A DNA stretch of 64,000 nucleotides from Vitrella brassicaformis CCMP3155. Its lineage: Eukaryota > Protista > Chromerida. Below, in pieces: positions 164 to 49,276 of the stretch. Both the position numbers and the translations under genes were made by a program. The stretch covers positions 1-64,000 of the forward strand of contig CDMY01000422.1 in NCBI GenBank assembly GCA_001179505.1, read 5' to 3'. The stretch's first letter is position 1; every line of letters begins with the position of its first letter. Under the pieces are notes generated by a model. That model was not told the origin of the DNA. It saw only the letters and a program-made list of their open reading frames with translations, and searched no databases.

Positions 164-3100
164 ATGCGGCGCATGCTCCTGATTTCTCCTCTGTGCCTGT
201 TCAGGGAAGAGTGCCACGCCGCCTTCGTGACGGCGCCTGAACCTCTATCCGCCACCTCGCTTCAAAGCGTCAAGTCCCGGAGATCTCCGAGACCCTGTGC
301 TCTGTCAGCCGTCTTTACTGAGCAACATTCCTCTGCCTCATCGTCGCTGAACGACCTCTTGCAGGCGCCCGGCGGTTCAACTTCAACGCGTCTTATCCTT
401 TTCGGGGGCAAGGGAGGGGTTGGGAAGACGACAACAGCAGCCGCAACTGCTGTTCGCTTCGCAGATGAGGGCCTGCGGACATTGATTATTAGTACAGATC
501 CAGCGCACAGCCTCGGAGATGCACTTGGACAGCAACTGCATGCCCCGCCGGATGAGATGACGGCCGTCGAAGGAGTGGACAATCTATGGGCGCTGGAGGT
601 GGACGCGGGGCAGGCTGTTATCGAGATGAAGGCAGCGCTGGAGACTTTCGATGCCATCGAGTTGTCGCGAAAGCTCGGCATCGGAACAACAGTGCTTGAA
701 GGCATCGGAATTGGTGACATGGTGAAACTCTTCGAGAACCCGCCGCCCGGAATCGATGAGCTTGTGGCCATTGCAAAGGTGCTGCAACTGACGAGAGGAA
801 AGGGTGGTGGTAAGCGGACGAATCGTACGCGATCTAATGGTAGTATGTCGCTTTGTCTCAGGAAGTTCCGGGGGCTCTCGATTTGATCGCCTTGTCATCG
901 ATACGGCTCCGACTGGTCACACGTTGAGGCTTCTAGCGGCACCTCAGTTTCTCGACGGCTTTTTGGGCAAAGTGATTAAGCTCAAGAATCAGTTAGACGC
1001 ACTAACGAGAAGTCTGAAGAAAATGCTGGCGTCTGTCAGCGGGGGCACCGAAGGTGCAGAGCCATTGCTTGACCAGGTATCTGGCACGTTTGTGTGGAGG
1101 TGAATGCTGTATCTTGCGTCGTTTATGTGCTGGTATAGGATGCCGCCCTTCAACGTATCGAGGCTCTTAAGGATCGCTTGCTAGGGCTACGTGGCCTCCT
1201 TCGTAACAGCGAAACGACAGAGTTCTGTGTGGTCACGATCCCAACAGAGATGGCTATCGCAGAATCCAAGCGGCTGCTGGCATCACTTAAGGTGGTGCGA
1301 CACCGCATTAGCTCGCAAAAACAACACTCTCTTTCGCGTGTCAATGCGTGCGTATTCAGAAGGAGGGCATTGCAGTCAAGCATCTCATTGTGAACAAACT
1401 GATGACAGCAGGCTCCGCAGAACAAGTCGGAGAGATACAGGAAACTCGCCGGGTGGCTACTCTTGCGTCCTTTGTCGAGCAACTACAGAGCGATCAAGTG
1501 AAGAGCCTGCAACGGCTGCATACACTGGCACAAGAAGCCAACCTGAGGCTCTCATTCGTGCCTTACTTTGATGTCGAGGTGAGTAGAGAAGTGAGACCAA
1601 CACGTCAACCCGCGGGCTTGCGTGGGTGTAGGTGACGGGCCCTCTCGGTCTGAGGTACTTTGGAGAAGAGGCCTTCGGCCGAGCCAATGCTCCCATGTGG
1701 TGGGCACGGCATGCAGCTGGCTTACAGCTGTCCGTGCGGCGTGTGCCCTTGTGTGCTGCAGGTCGGATCTGTTTGAGGACCCTAAGCGCCGTTGTATCAT
1801 CATGGGCGGGAAGGGCGGAGTAGGTAAATCATCTTCCTCAGCAGCACTGGCGATCAAAATGGCTGAAAAAGGGTACGAGGAATTAGCTTCTGTCTTTTCC
1901 TACTCCTTGATGCTATGTGATTCAGTTTCAAGACGCTGGTTGTGAGCACCGACCCCGCACATTCCCTTGGGGACGCACTGAAGGTCAACCTTGGTGGTGG
2001 CCAGCTTGTCAGGATCGACTCGGAGGGTAAGCATGCAGCACAAGGATGAGGCTCACAGACTGCAGCGTGACGCCTTTTAGGTACGGACCTGCGACTATTG
2101 CTGGAAAGCGCTACCAGTAGAGGCCAGCTTTTTGCACTCGAGATCGATACCGAAGTAAGAGAGGAAATCCCAGGACGGTCAGTCGGCGAATGCATTTGGG
2201 TGCTATTCCAGGGTACAGTGGCAGAGTTTCGCGAGGCGCTTTCTACCTCTCTTGCGACTACAAGGGCTTCTCTTAAGAGCAGCCGCAACTTGCGAGCACT
2301 GACGGGCACAGACGGCGTAGGTAAGCGTACGCATGAAGCACGAAGTTTATACACCACTGCAGTTGTCTAGGGTCGTTGTTCGACATCGAGGACCTCTTCG
2401 ATACTGCCCCCCCTGGCACAGACGAACTCGTTGCACTATCAAAGGTACCCAGCTTATAACTCATATGGCCGGCCCTCCTGCACTGCTGTCAGGTGTTTGG
2501 CATCCTGAACCGTCCCACGGATGACGGGCGCCCATTCGATCGTCTGATCATCGATACAGCTCCAACGGGCCATACACTCAGGCTACTTGCATTTCCGGAG
2601 TTCCTCGACAGCTTCTTCCAGAGGTTGCGCGAAATCCGCGATAGGTTCCAAAGTAGTGGCTTCGGATCATTGGGAGCAATGCTGGCAGGAGAGATGGAAG
2701 ATATGGATCTGACCAGAAGGAACGGTGGGCAACCAGAGACGGCTGGGCAGGGCGAAGAACATAATTGGAGGCATAGAATGGTGTTTGTAGACTCTTCATC
2801 GGATGGGGCATCCGGTCGTGATCGTTTGAAGGAGTTCCAGGACAAGATGGCTGAGCTTGATGATCTTTTCCACGATCCCGCACAGGCGGAATTCTGCATT
2901 GTGACCATTCCTACGGGTATAGTAAATGAGCGGTCATGCTATGAGTAAACGAGCACGCTCAGGCGTCTGTGTTCTGCTCAGAGTTGGCAGTGGCTGAGAC
3001 GGAGCGTCTTGTCAAGTCACTCAAACACGAGGGGATGCTCGTCAGACGCCTGATCGTCAACCAGGTAAGTTGTCTCGGTGCCCTATTGCGAGGTGCACAT

Positions 3101-3760: not shown

Positions 3761-5595
3761 TCAATCGATGGGTTCCAGAGAAGCACTATCAGCGTCTTCT
3801 CTACCAACGAGCAAAGGGATAGCAGCTTGTCGTACCCTCACATGCACTTCACCACTGTGATCGTAGAATTCACCGTCCACACAGAAACGCCCTGGAGACG
3901 TGAGAAAAATACTGATCTGTCGGACAGCGAACACTTCCACTGCTGGATGGCTGAAGTGAGCTCCTCTGTCAAGCTGGGAAGACCAAAGGAAGAGTGTAGG
4001 GTCCTAAGGAAAAGTGTACTTGCCTGGAGCATCAGGGTTAGCAGCTGTCTCCGAGGAAGCAGTGCTTTCACACACAAGACCTATGTCATACACAGCAATC
4101 GACCTCGTCACAGGCTGGCACTGCATCGAATCTCTTATACCTGTGCGATGCCGTTGTCAAGCTGAGTGTTGAAAGCGACGCGCTTGTTGTCAGTCCAATG
4201 CTGTACAGCATTGTTGTTGATTAAATGACTATGTCGCACGTGTCTCATGATGTAGATCGACTATATAGATGTGCATTGACCAGTACCTGCACTTTATCCA
4301 CTGACAATAAGTGAAGCAACTCAGTCCGCTCACGCTTCTCTCCCTCGGGTGTGACATACTTCATGCGGAACAAATACGCGGGACGTTGCATGATACACCA
4401 AAGTCCGGCAACATCGAACCGCTTTGGGCCTGATATGAGGATAGGAAAAAACATATGTGATGAGGTACGATTTCAGATGGTACGTACCGATCCACCGCAA
4501 CCGCTCAGCAACGAGATTCACGTCCAACAGCATGCCCAGATAGACACCATTGCTCCCCCAAACCTTGCCATCTGCTCGTCCCTCTCCCCCGCCATCGCAC
4601 TCGAGCAGGTCTATGGGCACCGCAACTCCCTGGACGATTCGATTGACAGCCCATCGCACAACATCCTCCATCCCGGAAAGCCCCTTGCTCCACAGCGCAC
4701 GCTCCTTGTTTCGCCCCCCAACAGACATTGGCGCTTGTGGTGCGAACAGGAAGTCGCTTGCGAGAGAGTTGGCAGTCCCCATGGGAACAATGCCTACTGG
4801 GGGAACTCTTAAGACATCGGACGACGGGATAGCAGAACAGTCGAATACACTCATAAGGCCGCCAATGACCTGCCCAGCACGGAAACGTAAAACCATTGCA
4901 AAGAGAATGAGGCTGTGCAAGGATGGATCTATCTACCTCTTGCATGGTTCCATCACCCCCGACCACCACGACGGCTGACACGTCTGCACGATGATCACCG
5001 GGTGGGAGAAGAGGGATTGTCAGGCACTCGGCGGAAGCAGCTTCGGAGGGATCTGGAGTACGAATGGCCAATTGCGCATGAGATGGCTCAAACAGACGCC
5101 GCGTGAGCTGGACGCCAGAACCGAGGCACGTCGTGTATAGCACTTCGATACAAGCACAAGGCAGCGTCTGAAGGAATAGGTAAAAACTCGCATCCTCAGG
5201 CACCACTCCACGTGCATGGTGTCACTAATTCCAACCTGGAGTGTCGGTAGAACAAGGCGCTCCGTTACTTCTCGTCCTCTTCCCGCTCCCGCGGTAGGAT
5301 TGGCTATTATCACCATCCTCGTTCCATCCCAAATTGTCGACGTTGTTCCCCACTTCCCTGACAGTGGCTGATAGTACGGCGCAGAGGCGCCGGAGCTGAG
5401 ACCCTCCGATACAGGGCCTGAAAGCCACACAACTGCTGTAATAACACCTCCGACGAAGGAGATCACTGCCAGAGCTGCCAACAGAGAGGGGACAAAAAGC
5501 GCAGCGGAGAAGCGAGGAAGGCTGATGGCCAAGGACGCGCAGATAGCGGGTTGAACGAAGGTGAAGTAGAGCCACACCCACAATGCGCGCCACAT
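3761..5595 (-). CDS. Diacylglycerol-kinase-catalytic-domain lipid kinase (sphingosine/ceramide kinase-like) with hydrophobic N-terminal segments; multi-exon
   Basis: Motifs IIANPTAGAGRG, VVVVGGDGTMQEV, GIVPMGTANSLA, VPIDLL, ERLRWIG in successive minus-strand exons. N-terminus MWRALWVWLYFTFV...LLAALAVISFVGGVITAVVWL. Last exon ...EDADSASLEPID, stop at 3761-3763. Confidence 0.8.
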
Positions 5596-6288
5596 CAGAG
5601 GACAAGATCTCACGAAACCCGTCCCGCGTCGTTCGCCCTGAGCAGGGCGAAGGTTACACGGGGATTCCGAGTAAGGGGCACCCACGGCGTGGGCGCGCCC
5701 TGGGATCTTTTCCTATTTCTCATTTCATCTAATTTTCTTGTGAAATGCTGTGCAATTGTTATGCCGCGAATCGGGCGGGGGTCGAATGCAGCGTGCGTAG
5801 TGGTGGTTGAATTATGGTTCACAGAGACGTGCACACGAGTGTTTGCATACCGACGCATGCAACAATGGCGAGAGTTTCAAAAACATGAACACAACAATGG
5901 CGAGAGCTCGATAAACATGCAGATCTTTAAGACAGACGTGGCGATAACATGCAGGTACTCAGACTGGCTGCACCAAGTGCACCAAGAACACAAGAAGCCC
6001 CCCCCCTGCTGCTCCCGTTTTCAAGACGTGCTTCGCGAAGTATATCAATGCATCGCTGGATACAATTGGATGTGCCTGTTGAAGGGGCTATCGAAGACTG
6101 CCCTCGATGACTATCAATCGGCTTGTCAATCAAATGCGAGCCGCCAGGATCAGCCCAACGATGACCTGCACCAGCAACGCAACAAGCTAAGTGAAATCGG
6201 CCACAGCCGCGGCACGTCAGATGAAGTAAGCCTCCTGATTGAGTAGCTTCTCTCCGAGTCAAATCTCTCCACACACGGTGGTCACTCG

Positions 6289-6830
6289 ATGAGTGCCGCC
6301 GATCTCACTCGACTGCTGGCGCAGCCGGCGTCCGCGTTCAAGCCGCCTGAGACAGTCTACGACAAGGCCTTCTCCATTGAGTGGGCGAGCCGTTACCGAT
6401 TGAACGAAGAGCAGATGCGGGCGTTCCAAATCATCTGCAGCCACTCCCTGAACCACCACAAAGACCTGAGGGACAACAAATACATCGCGCCATTGCGCAT
6501 GTGCCTTTCACCGGCAACCGTCATGAAAGCCGTGAAGGCTTAGTACAGGCACTTACCGGTGTGGCTGCAGACAACACCGAAGGCTCGAATTCGCTTCTGC
6601 GCCTCTTTGATGACTTCGAGAGTGGCGAGAAGAGGCTACCGCGCCAAGCGGGGCAGCAGCAGACAGATGGTGACCGCATTTGAGCAGAGAGGAGTCCTGC
6701 AAGCATATCCACTACATGATAGTTGGCGAGATCTCTTTCGTCAACCGCCAGAAGCTGGAAAAAAGGCGATGCGGCACTGAGGGACCTGCGAAAAGGCACT
6801 CAAGAAGGACATAAGGGATGGCGATATTTC
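6289..6830 (+). pseudogene. Decayed PIF1-family (Helitron-type) helicase fragment
   Basis: LNEEQMRAFQII...PLRMCLS with the expected GxxGTGKS P-loop missing; then, in other frames, LTGVAADNTEGS (motif Ia-like) and HYMIVGEISFVNRQKLEK (Walker B IxDEIS-like). Interrupted by stops and frameshifts. Confidence 0.75.
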
Positions 6831-7363
6831 GTTTGGAGGGAGTATGATCCTGTATTCGTTTTTGCGTCACGTGTCCTCCCTCCGAACGCGAGCTTTCTAC
6901 GTTCACTTAGGGTACATCAGTTTAACGTTCACTCACATAAAAAAAGTAACACCACACCGCTACCGTTTTTCCTTTTCTCTTTGAACGTTTTGCTTCCGAA
7001 CGCGTTGAAGACTCATTCATTCATTCATTCATTCATCAAGCGTCTCCTATGAGCGCATGAAAATGCATCCATGGAAACGGTCTAGCAACCCTGCGAAAAC
7101 GAGGGCGGCGAGTCCGGCTCACCCCTAGCTGGGTTTCGGAGAAAAATGCCAGTCCGTTTTTACCCCGATGGCGCGGGGTATACTTCCCCCGGGCGAGAGG
7201 AGGTGGTGTGCCAAGTATATGTTGTGGGGGTGCGTGTTGTGTGTGTACTGGTAAGTGTCCATCTCTGTCTGCCTCCCCTCCTGCGTGTGCCAGGTGCCTG
7301 CCTCCCTCTCCAATAAAAGAGCCGCATGCACACCCTCCGTCGCCTCGTGTCTCAGTTTAATTG

Positions 7364-7445
7364 CCGGGTTGCCTCGCGTTATGCGTGAAGAGACCGGGTT
7401 GCCACGCACTATGTAAGAGTGTCGGGTTGTCCCGTATGCATGCAA
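7364..7445. repeat. Three imperfect ~28-30 bp tandem units (CCGGGTTGCC...TATG...AAGAG) inside the element
   Basis: Units begin at 7364, 7394 and 7422. Confidence 0.6.
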
Positions 7446-8023
7446 GTGTGTTCATGGGCGTACGGATATCGTAGAAGTGCGCCGTCCCCTTCGGTGCGCG
7501 CGCGCATGCCTTCTTCTGTCCACTCGTCTGCTACTCGTGTGTTCTTCTGCAGGGACGTGGCTGTCGTGGAAAGGCTCTTCTATCTCGGGCTGAGGACGCC
7601 CCCGTCGCTTCGCGGGGCTTTCCACTGCAAATCGCACATCGTTGTAGCCGTCAGGTGGAGGCGGATGCAGCGGCGAGGTTTTGGAGGCGTCATTCGGGCA
7701 TACAGAGGAGAGTTTCCTCCTTCTTGTCATGATCGTCTGCGAGCTCACACACAACATGCGTGTTCTCACTCGCCCTGCAGTGAGGCATGCTTGGCGTCCT
7801 CGAAGGTCAACAGCATCTCCCACACCGAAGGTATTTTCGTGTATTTTCGCGCAAACGTAACACAAAAACATGAAGCTTCTTTTGTTGATGCATTGCCGTG
7901 TCCATAGTATGTAGAAGCAACACGTCACGGCTACTGATTTGCCTTTTCCTCTCATACGATCGTGATCGAACGTGGACGCGTTGTTTAGACGCAAATTGGC
8001 ACTAGCCCAATTCGCGGAAGACC

Positions 8024-17379: not shown

Positions 17380-17830
17380 GTGTGTGTGTTCTCTGTGTGT
17401 GTGTTCTCTGTGTGTGTTGTCTGTGTGTGTGTTGTCTGTGTGTGTGTTGTCTGTGTGTGTGTTGTCTGTGTGTGTCTGTGCCATTCGTTCTTGCAAAGGC
17501 GAGGCCCGAAGGGCCGAGCCTGAGCTGGCTTCTTTGGTCCGTGTGAGTTCTCTGTGTGTGTTCTCTGTGTGTGTCTCTGTGCATCACATGCAACCTCCCA
17601 CCCGCCCCCTGCACACACCGGTTGTCTCTCTCTTTCGTACGAAGGCGAGGCCCGAAGGGCCGAGCCTAAGCGTGGCTTCTCTCGTCTGTGTGAGTTCTCT
17701 ATGTGAGTTCTCTGTGTATCTGTGCATCACATGCAACCTCCCACCCACTCCTCTCTCTCTCTCTCTCTCTCTCGCTATTTGTGTGTGTGTGTAGTTGATG
17801 CGAAGGCGAGGCCCGAAGGGCCGAGCCGAG
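17380..17830. repeat. Compound tandem repeat: three exact 25-bp AAGGCGAGGCCCGAAGGGCCGAGCC units separated by TG/CT-rich related spacers
   Basis: Units start at 17496, 17642 and 17803. Spacers share GCATCACATGCAACCTCCCA. Preceded by 13-bp TGTGTGTGTT(C/G)TC repeats. Confidence 0.85.
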
Positions 17831-29876: not shown

Positions 29877-30628
29877 ATGGAGACACTAGTTCATGGATGG
29901 GGACTACTCCAAACGGAATGACGACATTGAAAGAACCCGGGCTGGACGGGGAGTCATGCCGTCCAATTTGATGCCGTCTCGCAGGACACCTGGCATCTGT
30001 GAGTACCAGGGTACATTACTGGTGGCGGATACGGACTCGGACAGTGCCGGTGGTTGCTTTTCTTAGCTAGGCGGTGGTGTGGGTGGCCCGCTTTGTCCAG
30101 TGTGTGTGTGGAAAAATACTGTTGAATGAAAAATGGATTGGAATAGTTTGACGCAAGATGAAGTTTGGGAGAGCTATATAATGCGAAGGGCAGCGAAGGA
30201 GCGCCGACGACAGGTCAGTTCATCTGAGTGATGCATGTGTCTCCGCGCCGGTCTGCGCTTCGTGCATCCCTCACTCCAGCAAAGGGGCCGAGAGTAAACA
30301 ACCTTCACTGTCTGCAGATACGTATCGTGACAGGGGCTGGATATTCGTGAGGCACCACACAAAAAAGCACGTGCCGTAGGGTATGCACGGACCTAAGACA
30401 CTGATGGCAGGCTCCTCTAGTACATATATATCTCAGCTTGAAAAGCCAGACAGAATAAAGGCCTACACCCACCCGTCCACCCCATCTCGGTCATCCATCA
30501 GTCAACAAGACCTACATATGTCGATCTACATATTGGTCTACGTAGAGAATCGAAAAAGGTATCAACGGGGAAAATTTCCCTCACCATATGAAATACACCA
30601 TACACAGATAGGGAGTGGGCAACTAATC

Positions 30629-33057
30629 TCATTGACAACACTTCGTGCCCAACAGATGCTCGTACTTGAGCAGAAGAGCTTCCTTAATTGCTTCCAGCTT
30701 CCCATGGGTGCTCCATGGAAAGATCGCTCTGCACTCTTTCTTGTTGCGCTGGTGCTTCATCACACAGCGCTTGTTGGCCGAATCGAGCGTGCACCCTGTC
30801 TTCTTGAGAGGTGGCAGTTCGTGTTTGGCGATCACATCGAGTGCAGCTTCGACGGCCGTCAGCTGCCGCCCATCCAGGCCCGTGAGCTGGGGCCCTGCCT
30901 CCTCGGTGTCATGCATGTCAACCGATGGCGCACACTCGCCGCACTCACCATCCTCCAGGTGCTGCCGTTTGCGCAGGAGAGCAGCAAGCAGCGCTTCCAT
31001 GCTGGTGGGGTAGTCGACCGTGCCTGAAGTGAACGGACTCCGTGTGGCTCATCAACTGCACGCACGCATAGAACAATACTGCTGATGGGTCAGATCTCAA
31101 CGAATCTACGTGATATGTTTCTATTCGTACCCATGCCGACGGAGGCCTGTGGGAAACTCCAATCCGAAAGTGAGGAGACACCTCACGTCGCTCTCGTATG
31201 GCGGCCTCGACCTCCTCGATGACACTGTTGATGCACTTGACTTTCAGACTCTGAGTCTCCTGTTTCTTGAATTCCTCCCACCCTGGCCCCCGTCAATGCA
31301 TTTGGGACAGCCATGGCCCTGCAGGTGCTGCTTCCTGCACTCCAGGGCGGCCAGCAGTGCCCCCCTCTCTCCGTCGTACAGTTGATGTTTGCGGAAATAA
31401 CGCTGACACGTCGAATGCCATGCAAGCCATCCTCCCGTCCGACCGTGGGTAGGGCGATGCTGCCGACGTCGACCGACTTGTTGTTGGTCTCCTCGATGGC
31501 CCTCTCGACGTCCTTGATCTCTCGCTGCTGGTACTCCTCGTACCGTTGTTGCGCTGTCTGCGCTGCCTGGCGGAGGGCTGCTGCCACCTGGCCACGACGT
31601 GTGTGAGTGGCGGGGAGAGGGGCGGGGGAAGGATCCTGGGGAGGGGGGAGGGGGTATACTTGCCGCGGGGAGGGATCTTACGCAGGTCGGGCTGGGGGTG
31701 GCCATCAGGGACAGGGGAGAGAGGAACAGTGCGGGAAGTGTCTGACTTGACCTAAAACAGCACAAGACACTCGCGGCGATTCGTATGTGCGGGCTGATTC
31801 GTACCTCGCCATCGATGCCTATGTAGACTGGGTACACGGGCTTGTGTCGGTTGTAGTACCTCAGATCCTCGAACTCCTCGGGCAACTCCGTCTTGTCAAA
31901 TGCATCACGGCCAGCGCCATCGCGAGGGACAATGCACCAGCTCATCACCTGCCACAACACAGACACGACAGTGGATAGATCCCTCAGACATATCAGGTTG
32001 TGCCACAGCTTCGTACCTGCGCGATCGATGGCGGTTCGCCCCCATTGTACTTGCTGTACTGGTTGTCGACCATCGTGAGGAAGCAGTGGGCGGTCATCCT
32101 CATCCCAGGAAGACGATAGCGGTTCGAACAGGAGCAGAAGACGTCGTACAGCTGGAGGGCCTCTGCAGGAACAAAGAACATCAGCCCATGAGTGGATGCA
32201 AGTGCGTGTGTTGCATTGTGCATTGATAGATTGCCAACCTTTCGGACTCTTGAAGCTCCACCTTTTCTTGACGACATCGAAGAACTTCTTCCAGTTGTTG
32301 CGCTCGTGGTTCCTGGCCCTTCCGTCCGTCCACACTGAGTCCACTGCTGCAAAGGGAACAGAAACAGACAAGATGATGAGGGCCGATGTGTCCTTCTGCC
32401 TTGTTAAGACTTACCTGCAGCGGTGTGATGCTGTCGTCTCCCTGCAATCCAGCAGCCTGGTCGCACTCGGCTGCCTCTGCAGTATAGCCTTGCTGCCTGA
32501 GGTAGTCGCACACCGCCATGACGCCCCCTGTGTTGGTAGTCTGCCGTAGCACGGACACGTCCTCGCGGAAAGCGAGGGTCTGCATACAACACATGCCAAG
32601 CAGCCACGTCCAAGCCGCCTGTTTCGTTTGTGAGGGGGTTTGCAGTTCACCTGCTTGAGCGTTTCGTAGAGTTTGTCGAACTCCTTCTTGATGCAGGTGG
32701 GGTCGATAGAGTGGAAATCGTGCACCTTCTCAGAAACAACGACTACCTGAATCGACACGCGGACAAGGAAGAGATTGTCTGATTAGTGCGGTATCGCCAG
32801 GTGTTTCCTTTGTTTACGTGGCGCTTGTGAGCTGCTTTGTGTGGCTTCAAGAGCTCTTCAAAGAAGGAGGGAAAGTCCATCGGTACCATCTCTCGCAGCT
32901 CCGAGTCGCCCTTGAAGAGGCCGTATTTCCATGCCGCAGGATCAGACTTGCCCTTGATAGGACGGCTCTTCCACCAATATGGGTAGACCTGCGATGGTGT
33001 AGAGCCCGGCTCCCCCTGTGGACTACAGATGTTGCTCACGTCCCATACGACGATCAT
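30629..33057 (-). pseudogene. Frameshifted multi-exon gene of a lineage-specific family with C-terminal tandem AP2-like/Cys-His modules
   Basis: Spliced exons with clean splice sites, but a +1 frameshift just before MEALL relative to the paralog at 47390-48003, and a phase conflict near 32350-32420. Modules GALLAALECRKQHLQGHGCPKC, MEALLAALLRKRQHLEDGECGEC and KLEAIKEALLLKYEHLLGTKCC. Confidence 0.6.
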
Positions 33058-39478: not shown

Positions 39479-40078
39479 CTACTCCATATTTGACATCCGC
39501 CTCTGGTGTAGTGCATAGCCCAGCAACCGCCCTGCATTGCTTGATCCCCTCCGCAACCCCCTGAACAGTCGATCTCTCGGCCCACCCGTCACCTCCCTCG
39601 TCCCATTCAAAGCGCCCTCCAACCGCTCCAGCACAGGGCTAGGAAGCACCTCCCCAGCCATGCCGTGACCCTCCACGAACCCCTGAATGACGTCATATGC
39701 GGCCTCGAGCTCCATCTCGGCATCGGACAATGCAGTGCTGGGCCGGGCACCCACCTGCTGAGCGGCCGACGACAGAAGCACCACCGCATCCGTCTGTGCT
39801 GCAGACGGTGATGTCGCAGTGGGAGAGGGGGCGGGCGACTCGATCGGGGAGATGGGAGGGAAAGAGGGCCCTTCCCAAGGCCACCCACCCCGCCAGCCCC
39901 CTGTCCATCTCTCCCCCCCCCCTCGCCGAATAACATCTCTTTCTTCTTGCACCACCTTCCCCCCTCGTGAATTCATGCTTTCTGGATCGAGGAGTAAGCA
40001 TGAGGTGACTCCATGCTTTCTGGCATGTACTCCGCGTGCAAGGGACCCACTTTGTCTGTCTTCCCCTCCCCCCGGCAC
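39479..40078 (-). pseudogene. Fragment of a dispersed lineage-specific coding family (ELEAAYDVIQGFVEGHG...), probably not a complete gene
   Basis: Open frame with paralogous DNA at 25845-26150. Its 5' part runs into unrelated repeat A. Confidence 0.45.
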
Positions 40079-41405
40079 AACGAGTCTTCAGACGCTTTCG
40101 AACTGCAATTTGCACCAGCGTGCGACTGCCATGTTGTCTCCTACCTATGAACATTGACACATTGAAGCTTGTCTTTTGAAGCCCCCTCCCCCGTTCAAGG
40201 GGGAGGGGGCGACATTGCATGGTCCACAAGGCATCTGACTTCACACGGTGTGCCTTTACTGCAATCACCCATCAGAAACAGCGATCGTCGGCTTCTGGAC
40301 CAGTGCTACCGCTAATGACTGAGTCCGCTTCATCCGCTCTCCCCGGATCCTTGCAAAATACCGTCAAATCGTTGCATCTCTTGCACGCTCCCTTTCAGGA
40401 TTTACCCTAAAGGTCAGCCCGTGGCCAATCGCGATCACTGGAAATTTGTGTACATTCGACTTTGGTGCGACATTTTGCCTGGTGTCCCTTCCCGATCGCC
40501 TCCCATTACTCGGGGGCCCCTCCCCCCTCGTAACCGTTCGTCGAGCCGCGTTCGCGGCGAGGCCCATCGAGGAGTAGCAAGCATGAGGTGAATTCATGCT
40601 TTCTGGCATGTACTCGCGCGTGCAAGGCCCCACTTTGTCTGTATTCCTCTCTCCCCAGCATAACGAGTCTTCAGACGGCTTTCCAACTCCAATTTGTGCC
40701 AGTGTGCGACTGCCTTATTGTCTCCTACCTACACCCCACCAGGACGAAATTGACTTGTTTCGCACTTGTTTCGTCTCTCTGTAGACTGATGCCTGTGAGG
40801 TAGGATGTGATTGTCGGCTGAAGGTGTGCATTGCGTGTTCGCCGGTGTGTTGCCGACGGCCGCCAGGCAGCAGACATTGGCTATCGGTTGATCATCCGTG
40901 CATCGCATTGATTGAGACGCCATGAGTCGGCTGATCGGCCAGGAAACGCAAGCATGCACCAGGGAGTAGTCGGCGGGCATCAGGCTGCATACCAGCGGTC
41001 ATCAGGGAGCACTCGGCAGGCGTCAGCGGCCCGGATTTCTGCTTGTGAGACTCGGTTTTCCTTTTCAGCCTCCAAAACCCGGTTTTCTGTCCTCAAGACG
41101 GGTTTTCTGTACACTGTACAGGGCTGCTGGTTTTCTGCACGAGCAGCTGCTTTTCTGTAGAGAGGCTGGTTTTCTGTACAGAGACAGACAGTCGGGGATA
41201 ATACGTTCATAACAGTGCAATGACAGTGCAGCGTCCCTTTCACGGTTTAGTAAAACGAGTCTGTGCGAGTCCATAGAAAATCACGAGTCAGGAGAAGGTG
41301 GATAAGCAATATTGGTGCGAAATTTGTTCCTTGCCGACCGCCTCCCACACGGGGGCCCCTCCCCGCTCGTAACCGTTCGTCGAGCCTTCACGGCAGGCCC
41401 ATCGA
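39986..41405. repeat. Interleaved direct repeats A1 (39986-40147), B1 (40462-40570), A2 (40566-40731), B2 (41312-41405)
   Basis: A1/A2 share ATCGAGGAGTA...CATGAGGTGA...ACGAGTCTTCAGACG...GTCTCCTACCTA. B1/B2 share TTGGTGCGA...GGGGGCCCCTCCCC...CGTAACCGTTCGTCGAGCC...GGCCCATCGA. Confidence 0.8.
41259..41298 (-). repeat. 40-bp remnant of the same non-LTR element end as 16403-16442
   Basis: 37 of 40 bases identical, counted by eye; covers the PSPDx-stop region. Confidence 0.7.
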
Positions 41406-48072: not shown

Positions 48073-49276
48073 TTCCGAGTAAGGGGCACCCACTGCGTGG
48101 GCACCCCGGGCCGCGAATTGGGCGGGGGTCCAAAGCAGCGTGCGAAGTGGCGGTGAATTATGCGTCACAGAGACATGCACAGCACGAGTGTTGGCGAGAA
48201 GCACACCGACGCATGCAACAATAGCGAGAGTGTCAAAAAACATGCAGACAACAATGGCGGGAGCTTGAAAAACATGCAGATCTCGAAGACAGACGTGGCA
48301 ATAACATGCAGGTACTCAAGAGGGCTGCAGTAAGAACACAAGACACGCCCTTGTTGAAGACGTGCTTGGCCAAGTATATCAATGCATCGATGCATTGATA
48401 TGTGAACCTATCGATATCCAGCGGTGATATCAATAGACATGTATCAATCTAGCGCGCCTGTTGAAGGGGCTATTGAAGACTGCCTTCGATGACTGTCAAT
48501 CGGCTTGTCAATCAAATGGGAGCCGCCAGGGTCAACCCAACGATGACCTGCACCAGCAACGCAACAAGGTAAATGAAATCGGCCACAGCCGCGCCACGTC
48601 AGATGAAGCAAGCCCCCTGAGTNNNNNNNNNNNNNNNNNNNNNNNNNNNNNNNNNNNNNNNNNNNNNNNNNNNNNNNNNNNNNNNNNNNNNNNNNNNNNN
48701 NNNNNNNNNNNNNNNNNNNNNNNNNNNNNNNNNNNNNNNNNNNNNNNNNNNNNNNNNNNNNNNNNNNNNNNNNNNNNNNNNNNNNNNNNNNNNNNNNNNN
48801 NNNNNNNNNNNNNNNNNNNNNNNNNNNNNNNNNNNNNNNNNNNNNNNNNNNNNNNNNNNNNNNNNNNNNNNNNNNNNNNNNNNNNNNNNNNNNNNNNNNN
48901 NNNNNNNNNNNNNNNNNNNNNNCACACAGACGAGTGTTACGGTTAATGACAGTTTCCACTCTTGCTTTTTTAAGAAGTTCGCGCCCAGAGATGCCCTTCA
49001 AGCATCAGCGGTTTCATGTAGCACCCTAGACGTCCTGACCGCCAAGCTTTTCCAATAACTTGCCGCTTTAGGGCATATCCGTTTGACGGTCACTGATCCA
49101 AACGTGACAAAAAACATGAAGCTGTTCGACATATTGGCGTGTCTGTAGTAGTGCGAGCAACACATCACCGCTACCGATTTCCCTTTTTTCTTCCATACGA
49201 TCGCGATCGAACGTTTTGTCCGACCGGACGTGTTGTTTCTTAAAGACGCAAATCGGGCACTAGCCCAATTCGCGGA
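48073..49276. mobile_element. Non-autonomous Helitron/Helentron-like element, copy 2 (contains an assembly gap)
   Basis: Perfect 13-bp inverted repeats at 48111-48123 and 49263-49275, hairpin at about 48083-48107, homology to 5664-6240 and 7850-8018. Flanks rejoin to match the empty site at 30536/30537. Confidence 0.85.
48623..48922. other. Assembly gap (300 N)
   Basis: Run of N. Confidence 1.

Follow-up and report, generated by a model that had tools for sequence, protein, structure and literature searches.

The stretch of DNA analysed here (the window) comprises 64,000 nucleotides of contig CDMY01000422.1 of Vitrella brassicaformis CCMP3155, and carries two copies of a repeated element, both lying on the minus strand (Table 1). 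Comparison within the window shows that the two copies have both termini in common, and they are present at the places where the initial annotation had reported a pair of copies with shared ends. The ends of copy 2 are set by a paralogous, uninterrupted locus in the same window. In inverted orientation, the flanks of copy 2 align to nt 30442–30536 and 30537–30640 with about 87–90% identity, and the alignment breaks at exactly CATATTGG|TCTACGTAG. Relative to the empty site, the filled site of copy 2 has gained, besides the element, exactly one T when read on the minus strand (an A when read on the plus strand). The claim that an empty site fixes the ends is therefore correct, and it does so to within one base. 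For copy 1, previously placed at 5664–8018, the outer limit at 8018 was retained but the start was moved to 5665, following the boundary convention applied to copy 2.

Table 1. Positions of the two element copies, their parts and the empty site in the window.
Feature	Position (nt)	Strand	Remarks
Copy 1	5665–8018	−	Degenerate, 2354 bp; on the minus strand runs from the T-CCGCG end at 8018 to ...CTCGGAA at 5665
Copy 1, 3' hairpin	5675–5699	−	One arm altered relative to the family consensus
Copy 1, 64-bp insertion	5700–5763		Between hairpin and 3' inverted repeat; absent from 28 other copies examined
Copy 1, subterminal 13-nt inverted repeat (3' ATIR, element strand)	5764–5776	+
Copy 1, PIF1 helicase relic, Helitron-type	6076–6806	+	Broken, with stop codons; 53–73% identical to the 495-aa ORF of C355
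Copy 1, segment of ~1.04 kb	6811–7851		Foreign to typical copies; matches C223, C843, C418 and C243
Copy 1, terminal 13-nt inverted repeat (5' ATIR)	8005–8017	−	Terminal T at 8018 (A on the plus strand)
Paralogous empty site	30529–30545	+	Insertion point 30536|30537
Copy 2	48073–49276	−	Ends set by the empty site
Copy 2, 3' hairpin	48083–48107	−	11-bp stem with two G.T wobbles; ends 10 nt from the element end
Copy 2, subterminal 13-nt inverted repeat (3' ATIR)	48111–48123	+
Copy 2, assembly gap	48623–48922		300 N
Copy 2, 5' hairpin	49246–49275	−	Terminal repeat 49263–49275 paired with 49246–49258

Read along the window minus strand, the consensus element starts with a T followed by the 13-nt repeat CCGCGAATTGGGC, and the repeat begins at nt 2 in 17 of the 19 true ends. 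Together with the next 12 nt, the terminal repeat forms a 5' hairpin (12-bp stem, 4-nt loop) that is kept in the copies. The order at the 3' end is the complementary 13-nt repeat, a 3-nt spacer, a 25-nt hairpin (11 bp, 3-nt loop) and a final 10 nt, TTACTCGGAA; the 3' inverted repeat thus ends 38 nt from the element end. The asymmetric subterminal inverted repeats of 13 bp that had been described earlier were found in both copies, with one mismatch between the paired repeats of copy 1 and none in copy 2, and the repeat motif occurs five times in the window against 0.32 expected. The 3' hairpin was likewise described and is real in both copies, but its counterpart at the other end was missed. 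In each of the two stems, two of the pairs are G.T wobbles when read on the minus strand, whereas the opposite strand would have C.A mismatches there. The minus strand folds better than the plus strand at both ends and, for the 5' hairpin, the values are −15.3 kcal/mol (z −1.9) on the minus strand versus −10.6 on the other. The wobbles and the better folding suggest that the minus strand is the one recognised as single-stranded DNA, and such strand-specific G.T pairs in both hairpins offer a simple clue to the moved strand that can be read from sequence alone. The hairpins are nearly invariant among copies, so covariation gives no support.

Copy 1 is atypical of the family in three respects: a 64-bp insertion, a hairpin arm that is altered, and ~1.04 kb of foreign sequence. 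This foreign segment is low-copy, includes three imperfect repeats of ~30 nt near 7360–7440, and could have been captured from the host or be a repeat nested in the copy. A search of copy 1 against Rfam gave no match. Elsewhere in the window, three copies of a GC-rich palindromic motif of ~26 nt (GGCCC-GAA-GGGCC core) occur at 17473–17827 and sit in TG/TC microsatellite arrays (17.3–18.5 kb), while a unit of ~583 bp is present twice in tandem at 39989–40731, with 87–91% identity.

The genome searched consists of 72,700,666 bases in 1064 contigs, the window representing contig C422. Used as query, copy 1 returned 110 matching pieces on about 45 contigs. Pattern searches detected 48 hairpin-side ends genome-wide, 40 of them identical over 22 nt (a control pattern gave 0), and about 40 ends of the other kind. 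As the original reading implied, the two termini co-occur across the genome; the ends are invariant, and 12 complete pairs were present among the 30 loci read. Typical copies are 1.5–1.6 kb long and diverge from each other by roughly 10–25%, and one additional copy was found on a metagenome contig. At least some copies appear to be transcribed, since an assembly of MMETSP transcripts yields a predicted protein with 83% identity to the family ORF. Many copies are clustered and lie on small repeat-rich contigs, as might be expected of segmental duplications or a dispersed satellite, but 20 or more loci have unrelated flanks, the copies end sharply and identically, and an empty site marks the insertion precisely, all of which makes it scarcely credible that this is non-mobile DNA. 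The family comprises about 50 remnants of non-autonomous rolling-circle transposons of the Helitron2 type; an intact autonomous copy with both ends was not found in the assembly.

The flanks of the copies define the target. On the plus strand, the element is adjoined by an A (T on the element strand) at every one of the 29 distinct junctions on its left and the 19 true junctions on its right. The second base varies, being G (12), A (7), C (7) or T (3) on the left and C (9), A (6) or T (4) on the right, and the base adjoining the flanking T is itself a T in only 6/19 and 7/29 junctions. None of the 12 complete copies shares two to five flanking bases, and the single copy that shares six lies inside a simple repeat of the CACTC type. 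There is one T on each side of every copy and only one T in the empty site, and on C491, where one family copy has inserted into another, exactly one T is likewise added. No further non-self empty sites were present in the loci read, the extra comparisons all being insertions into other family copies. The one constant flanking base, the lack of sharing over 2–5 bp and the single additional T in filled sites indicate that insertion occurs beside a single T, with no target duplication or one of 1 bp at most. The TC target or 2-bp TC/GA duplication proposed in the initial annotation, an idea that came from having only two copies in view, is ruled out by these 48 junctions and the 12 complete copies. 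Flanking GA dinucleotides on both sides are likewise not shared by the family as a whole; the right G belongs to the element and the left G is found at only 12 of 29 junctions.

The same data bear on whether the element could be a cut-and-paste DNA transposon with terminal inverted repeats and a 2-bp TC/GA duplication. The 13-nt inverted repeat and the plus-strand GA on each side of both window copies would fit such an element, but the variable second base at left junctions, and the lack of any complete copy (0/12) with two shared flanking bases, do not. In addition, one of the inverted repeats is not terminal but 38 nt in from the end, the 38 nt outside it being part of the inserted DNA, whereas transposons with terminal inverted repeats carry them at both extreme ends and make a duplication of fixed length. 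Neither a DDE transposase nor a long duplication, the signs that were expected to tell against a rolling-circle element, was seen, and the copies hold a relic of a Helitron-type helicase instead of a DDE domain. A cut-and-paste origin is therefore very improbable.

In the Helitrons that have been studied, the left end, the flank of the right end and the target are all cut by the transposase 5' of a T. By analogy, insertion between any base and a T (N|T), with the 5' T belonging to the element, is preferred here over T|N because a single cutting rule, 5' of T, would serve the left end, the right flank and the target, and would give the usual 5' T(C) start. Sequence alone is compatible with N|T, T|N or a 1-bp duplication at all junctions. 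A minority view, which we regard as a real but clearly less probable possibility, is that the same Helitron2-type family has its boundary shifted by one base, so that the element runs from CCGCG... to ...CGGAAT and inserts at T|N, or that it makes a true 1-bp duplication of T; the empty site has one T and the filled site two, every junction fits either boundary, and the same one-base ambiguity was reported for FoHeli1/2 (PMC5148889).

The PIF1 relic noted earlier in copy 1 was confirmed, as it matches the longest ORF of the family (495 aa, on contig C355), which scores 85 bits against the Pfam PIF1 model. A protein search with this ORF among 1.8 billion representatives returned many long proteins with 34–38% identity, and all five of the long best hits that were scanned (2000–2800 aa) carry DUF6570, Helitron_like_N and PIF1 domains. 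In the genome itself, the relic has matches to helicases at DUF6570-type loci and to no others. By sequence it appears closest to transposases of the DUF6570-Rep-PIF1 (HLE2) type, DUF6570 being a marker of HLE2 according to HELIANO (PMC11417382). Long relics occur on C355 and C81, in both cases at the contig start; they are 98.9% identical to each other and align to residues ~1030–2066 of a 2342-aa HLE2 transposase, i.e., over ~1000 aa. On C355, an element end (4629–4645) in the same strand orientation lies downstream of the relic gene. The distance from the last helicase match (to ~4220) to the end at 4645 is only about 425 bp, which leaves no room for an AP endonuclease; a Pfam search of the family ORFs also found no endonuclease domain. 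Of the Helentron/Helitron2 architecture suggested by the initial annotation, the Helitron2 (HLE2) ends are thus retained while the Helentron assignment is not. The initial annotation had also called for a search for long copies with both Rep and PIF1. Helicase relics with the 3' end are present on C355 and C81, but in the loci read neither Rep nor DUF6570 is linked to both termini. As the C355 relic runs on the same strand into a proper element end, the direction of the gene is from the hairpin-bearing end to the opposite one, a layout termed 'HLE2-reverse'. Reversed layouts are known in Helitron-2_CRe, Helitron-1_DR, FoHeli3-5 and proto-Helentron (PMC3627910, PMC5148889, PMC11417382).

A different kind of HUH single-strand transposon (IS200/IS605-like, Y1), or an element of another sort that had captured a fragment of a Helitron helicase, could also have hairpins at both ends, no duplication and a fixed base beside the insertion, and the relic gene does run antisense to the strand that gives the better-folding hairpins. 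Reversed gene orientation is, however, documented for Helitron2 elements and FoHeli3-5, the architecture of the ends is that of Helitron2 point for point, and the long relics extend without a change of orientation over ~1000 aa of an HLE2 transposase and into the proper element end. A Y1 transposase was not seen, and such an origin is considered quite unlikely.

The typical short copies match the copy on C219 for 259 bp from the hairpin-side end and then pass directly, without filler, into C355-like sequence that in C355 itself lies just downstream of transposase-coding DNA. A single internal deletion of a long parent would produce such a direct switch, and sequence comparison identifies typical copies as internal-deletion derivatives of a long element that would have encoded an HLE2 transposase. 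Other copies retain more of the 3' part of C355 (91–97% identity), so several deletion derivatives exist. C219 carries DUF6570 and Rep domains 4.6–8 kb downstream of the hairpin-side end and on the same strand. When all Rep-bearing loci were checked, family termini were found near C219 only, and there only the hairpin-side end. In the parts read, the 5' part of C219 did not match the 3' part of C355/C81 by DNA or translated comparison. Past the Rep domain, C219 is a mosaic of other repeats, while its DNA after the 259-bp breakpoint is single-copy and could be host DNA. A single-copy, apparently multi-exon coding region without a Pfam match lies on the minus strand of this contig (C219:50300–52060, equivalent to L056:2300–4060), between the family hairpin-side end and the DUF6570-Rep gene; it could belong to the host or serve as an accessory gene in a long Helitron. 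Seven contigs (C30, C282, C328, C335, C565, C715 and C727) begin 130–350 bp inside the hairpin-side end of a copy, near the 259-bp point where long and short forms part, and the assembly probably breaks at the difference between the two forms.

Taken as a whole, the family is best explained (with a probability of about 0.85) as some 50 non-autonomous rolling-circle elements of the Helitron2 (HLE2) type that have T plus hairpin ends, derive from a parent of reverse layout and insert at N|T. By analogy with Helitrons that have been studied, a transposase acting in trans would nick the element strand 5' of its first T, its PIF1 helicase would unwind the strand 5' to 3', and the single strand would be pasted 5' of any T (N|T) without duplication. 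More speculatively, the elements could belong to a chromerid lineage of reverse-layout HLE2 whose transposase requires no more than a T at the nick, which uses the 5' hairpin region of its own copies as a preferred target or alternative joining site, and whose autonomous master, still active as the 98.9% identity between the two long relics might indicate, is hidden in assembly breaks; this proposal is tentative and rather doubtful at present.

Helitron2 was defined by Bao & Jurka in 2013 (PMC3627910), with Helitron-1_CRe and Helitron-2_CRe of Chlamydomonas as examples, and corresponds to HLE2 in HELIANO (PMC11417382). In Helitron2 the 5' inverted repeat is 0–2 nt from the 5' end (PMC3627910), compared to 2–4 nt in HINEs (PMC4067079). 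The Vitrella family resembles Helitron2 in its T start, in a 5' inverted repeat placed 1–2 nt from the end and forming a 5' hairpin, in a 3' inverted repeat just upstream of the 3' hairpin, and in the absence of a target duplication of 2 bp or more, the one-base ambiguity remaining. Its helicase relic appears closest to RepHel proteins bearing DUF6570, and the reversed gene order is shared with some Helitron2 members. It departs from Helitron2 in the distance between the 3' inverted repeat and the end, 38 nt versus ~20–30 nt in the original definition (PMC3627910) but within the overall published range of some 20–60 nt, and in that no autonomous copy has been assembled. The target, a single T without a T|T or T-rich requirement, also differs, but this is a soft criterion; a T|T rule is often applied to HLE2 (PMC11417382), and published HLE2 targets vary, including TNAT|A or no preference (PMC5148889).

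FoHeli3-5 of Fusarium oxysporum and the proto-Helentron of Phytophthora share with the Vitrella family a stem-loop at the 5' side of the gene, outside the inverted repeat, as well as inverted repeats of 12–16 nt and a weak or absent target preference (PMC5148889, PMC11417382). Their terminal sequences are unrelated to those of the Vitrella family, whose host is a chromerid alveolate and which, unlike FoHeli3-5, has hairpins at both ends, as do FoHeli1/2. DINE-1/HINE elements, the non-autonomous partners of Helentrons (PMC4067079), have inverted repeats 2–4 nt from the 5' end and 38–60 nt from the 3' end, with a palindrome 8–35 nt from the 3' end. The Vitrella repeat and palindrome distances match these values, and both groups are abundant, non-autonomous and have empty sites without target modification. 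However, the Vitrella consensus has no variable terminal T run or central microsatellite block, its target is not T-rich, and its parent shows no room for an AP endonuclease. Canonical Helitrons (HLE1) are similar in their TC start, a hairpin ending 10 nt from the 3' end, lack of duplication and a PIF1-type helicase, but the Vitrella elements end in CGGAA rather than CTRR, have asymmetric inverted repeats and a 5' hairpin, and do not insert at A|T, the 5' flanking base being G, A or T with no preference for A.

The genome paper of V. brassicaformis lists 18,147 bp as 'Helitron' and 13 Mb of unclassified repeats, and does not describe a Helitron family (PMC4501334); beyond that paper, no link between Vitrella and Helitrons was found in the accessible literature. 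The suggestion of an undescribed rolling-circle family is thus right insofar as the family is uncatalogued in the accessible literature, but its kind is already known; it is an ordinary Helitron2-type family and not a new class. V. brassicaformis gains a Helitron2-type family with ends defined to within one base, which alone adds roughly 70 kb to the annotated Helitron DNA of this species, and the termini can be used as annotation seeds in other chromerid and alveolate genomes. The general understanding of rolling-circle transposons is unchanged, as the proposed new 'TC' target does not exist. A separate Vitrella HLE2 family (DUF6570-Rep-PIF1) was also noticed, with a conserved terminal block of ~55 nt and an 8-bp hairpin at the 3' side of the gene (L057:6087–6138, L058:5754–5805 and L059:4377–4431, on C347, C239 and C314, respectively). 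It is in the ordinary orientation and ends in ...CTAGCA followed by T.

About a quarter of the junctions (7/30 left, ~6/19 right) fall within other copies of the family, mostly in the final 30 nt that form the 5' hairpin, and the family makes up only ~0.1% of the genome. The loci concerned are L008 (C704), L013 (C804), L014 (C745), L018 (C425), L020 (C872), L007/L017 (C491), L015 (C220), L023 (C214), L030 (C81) and L062 (the metagenome contig). Either the hairpin region of its own copies is a favoured target of the family, or joining goes wrong at this region. Three contigs have in common a dimer junction, head to tail, in which a copy minus its last 30 nt is joined directly to a complete copy (L008, minus strand, 1464–3072; L014, plus strand, 1464–3011; L013, minus strand, at 410). 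The outer flanks differ in at least two of these three contigs, and so the dimer seems to have moved as one unit via the end of the inner copy.
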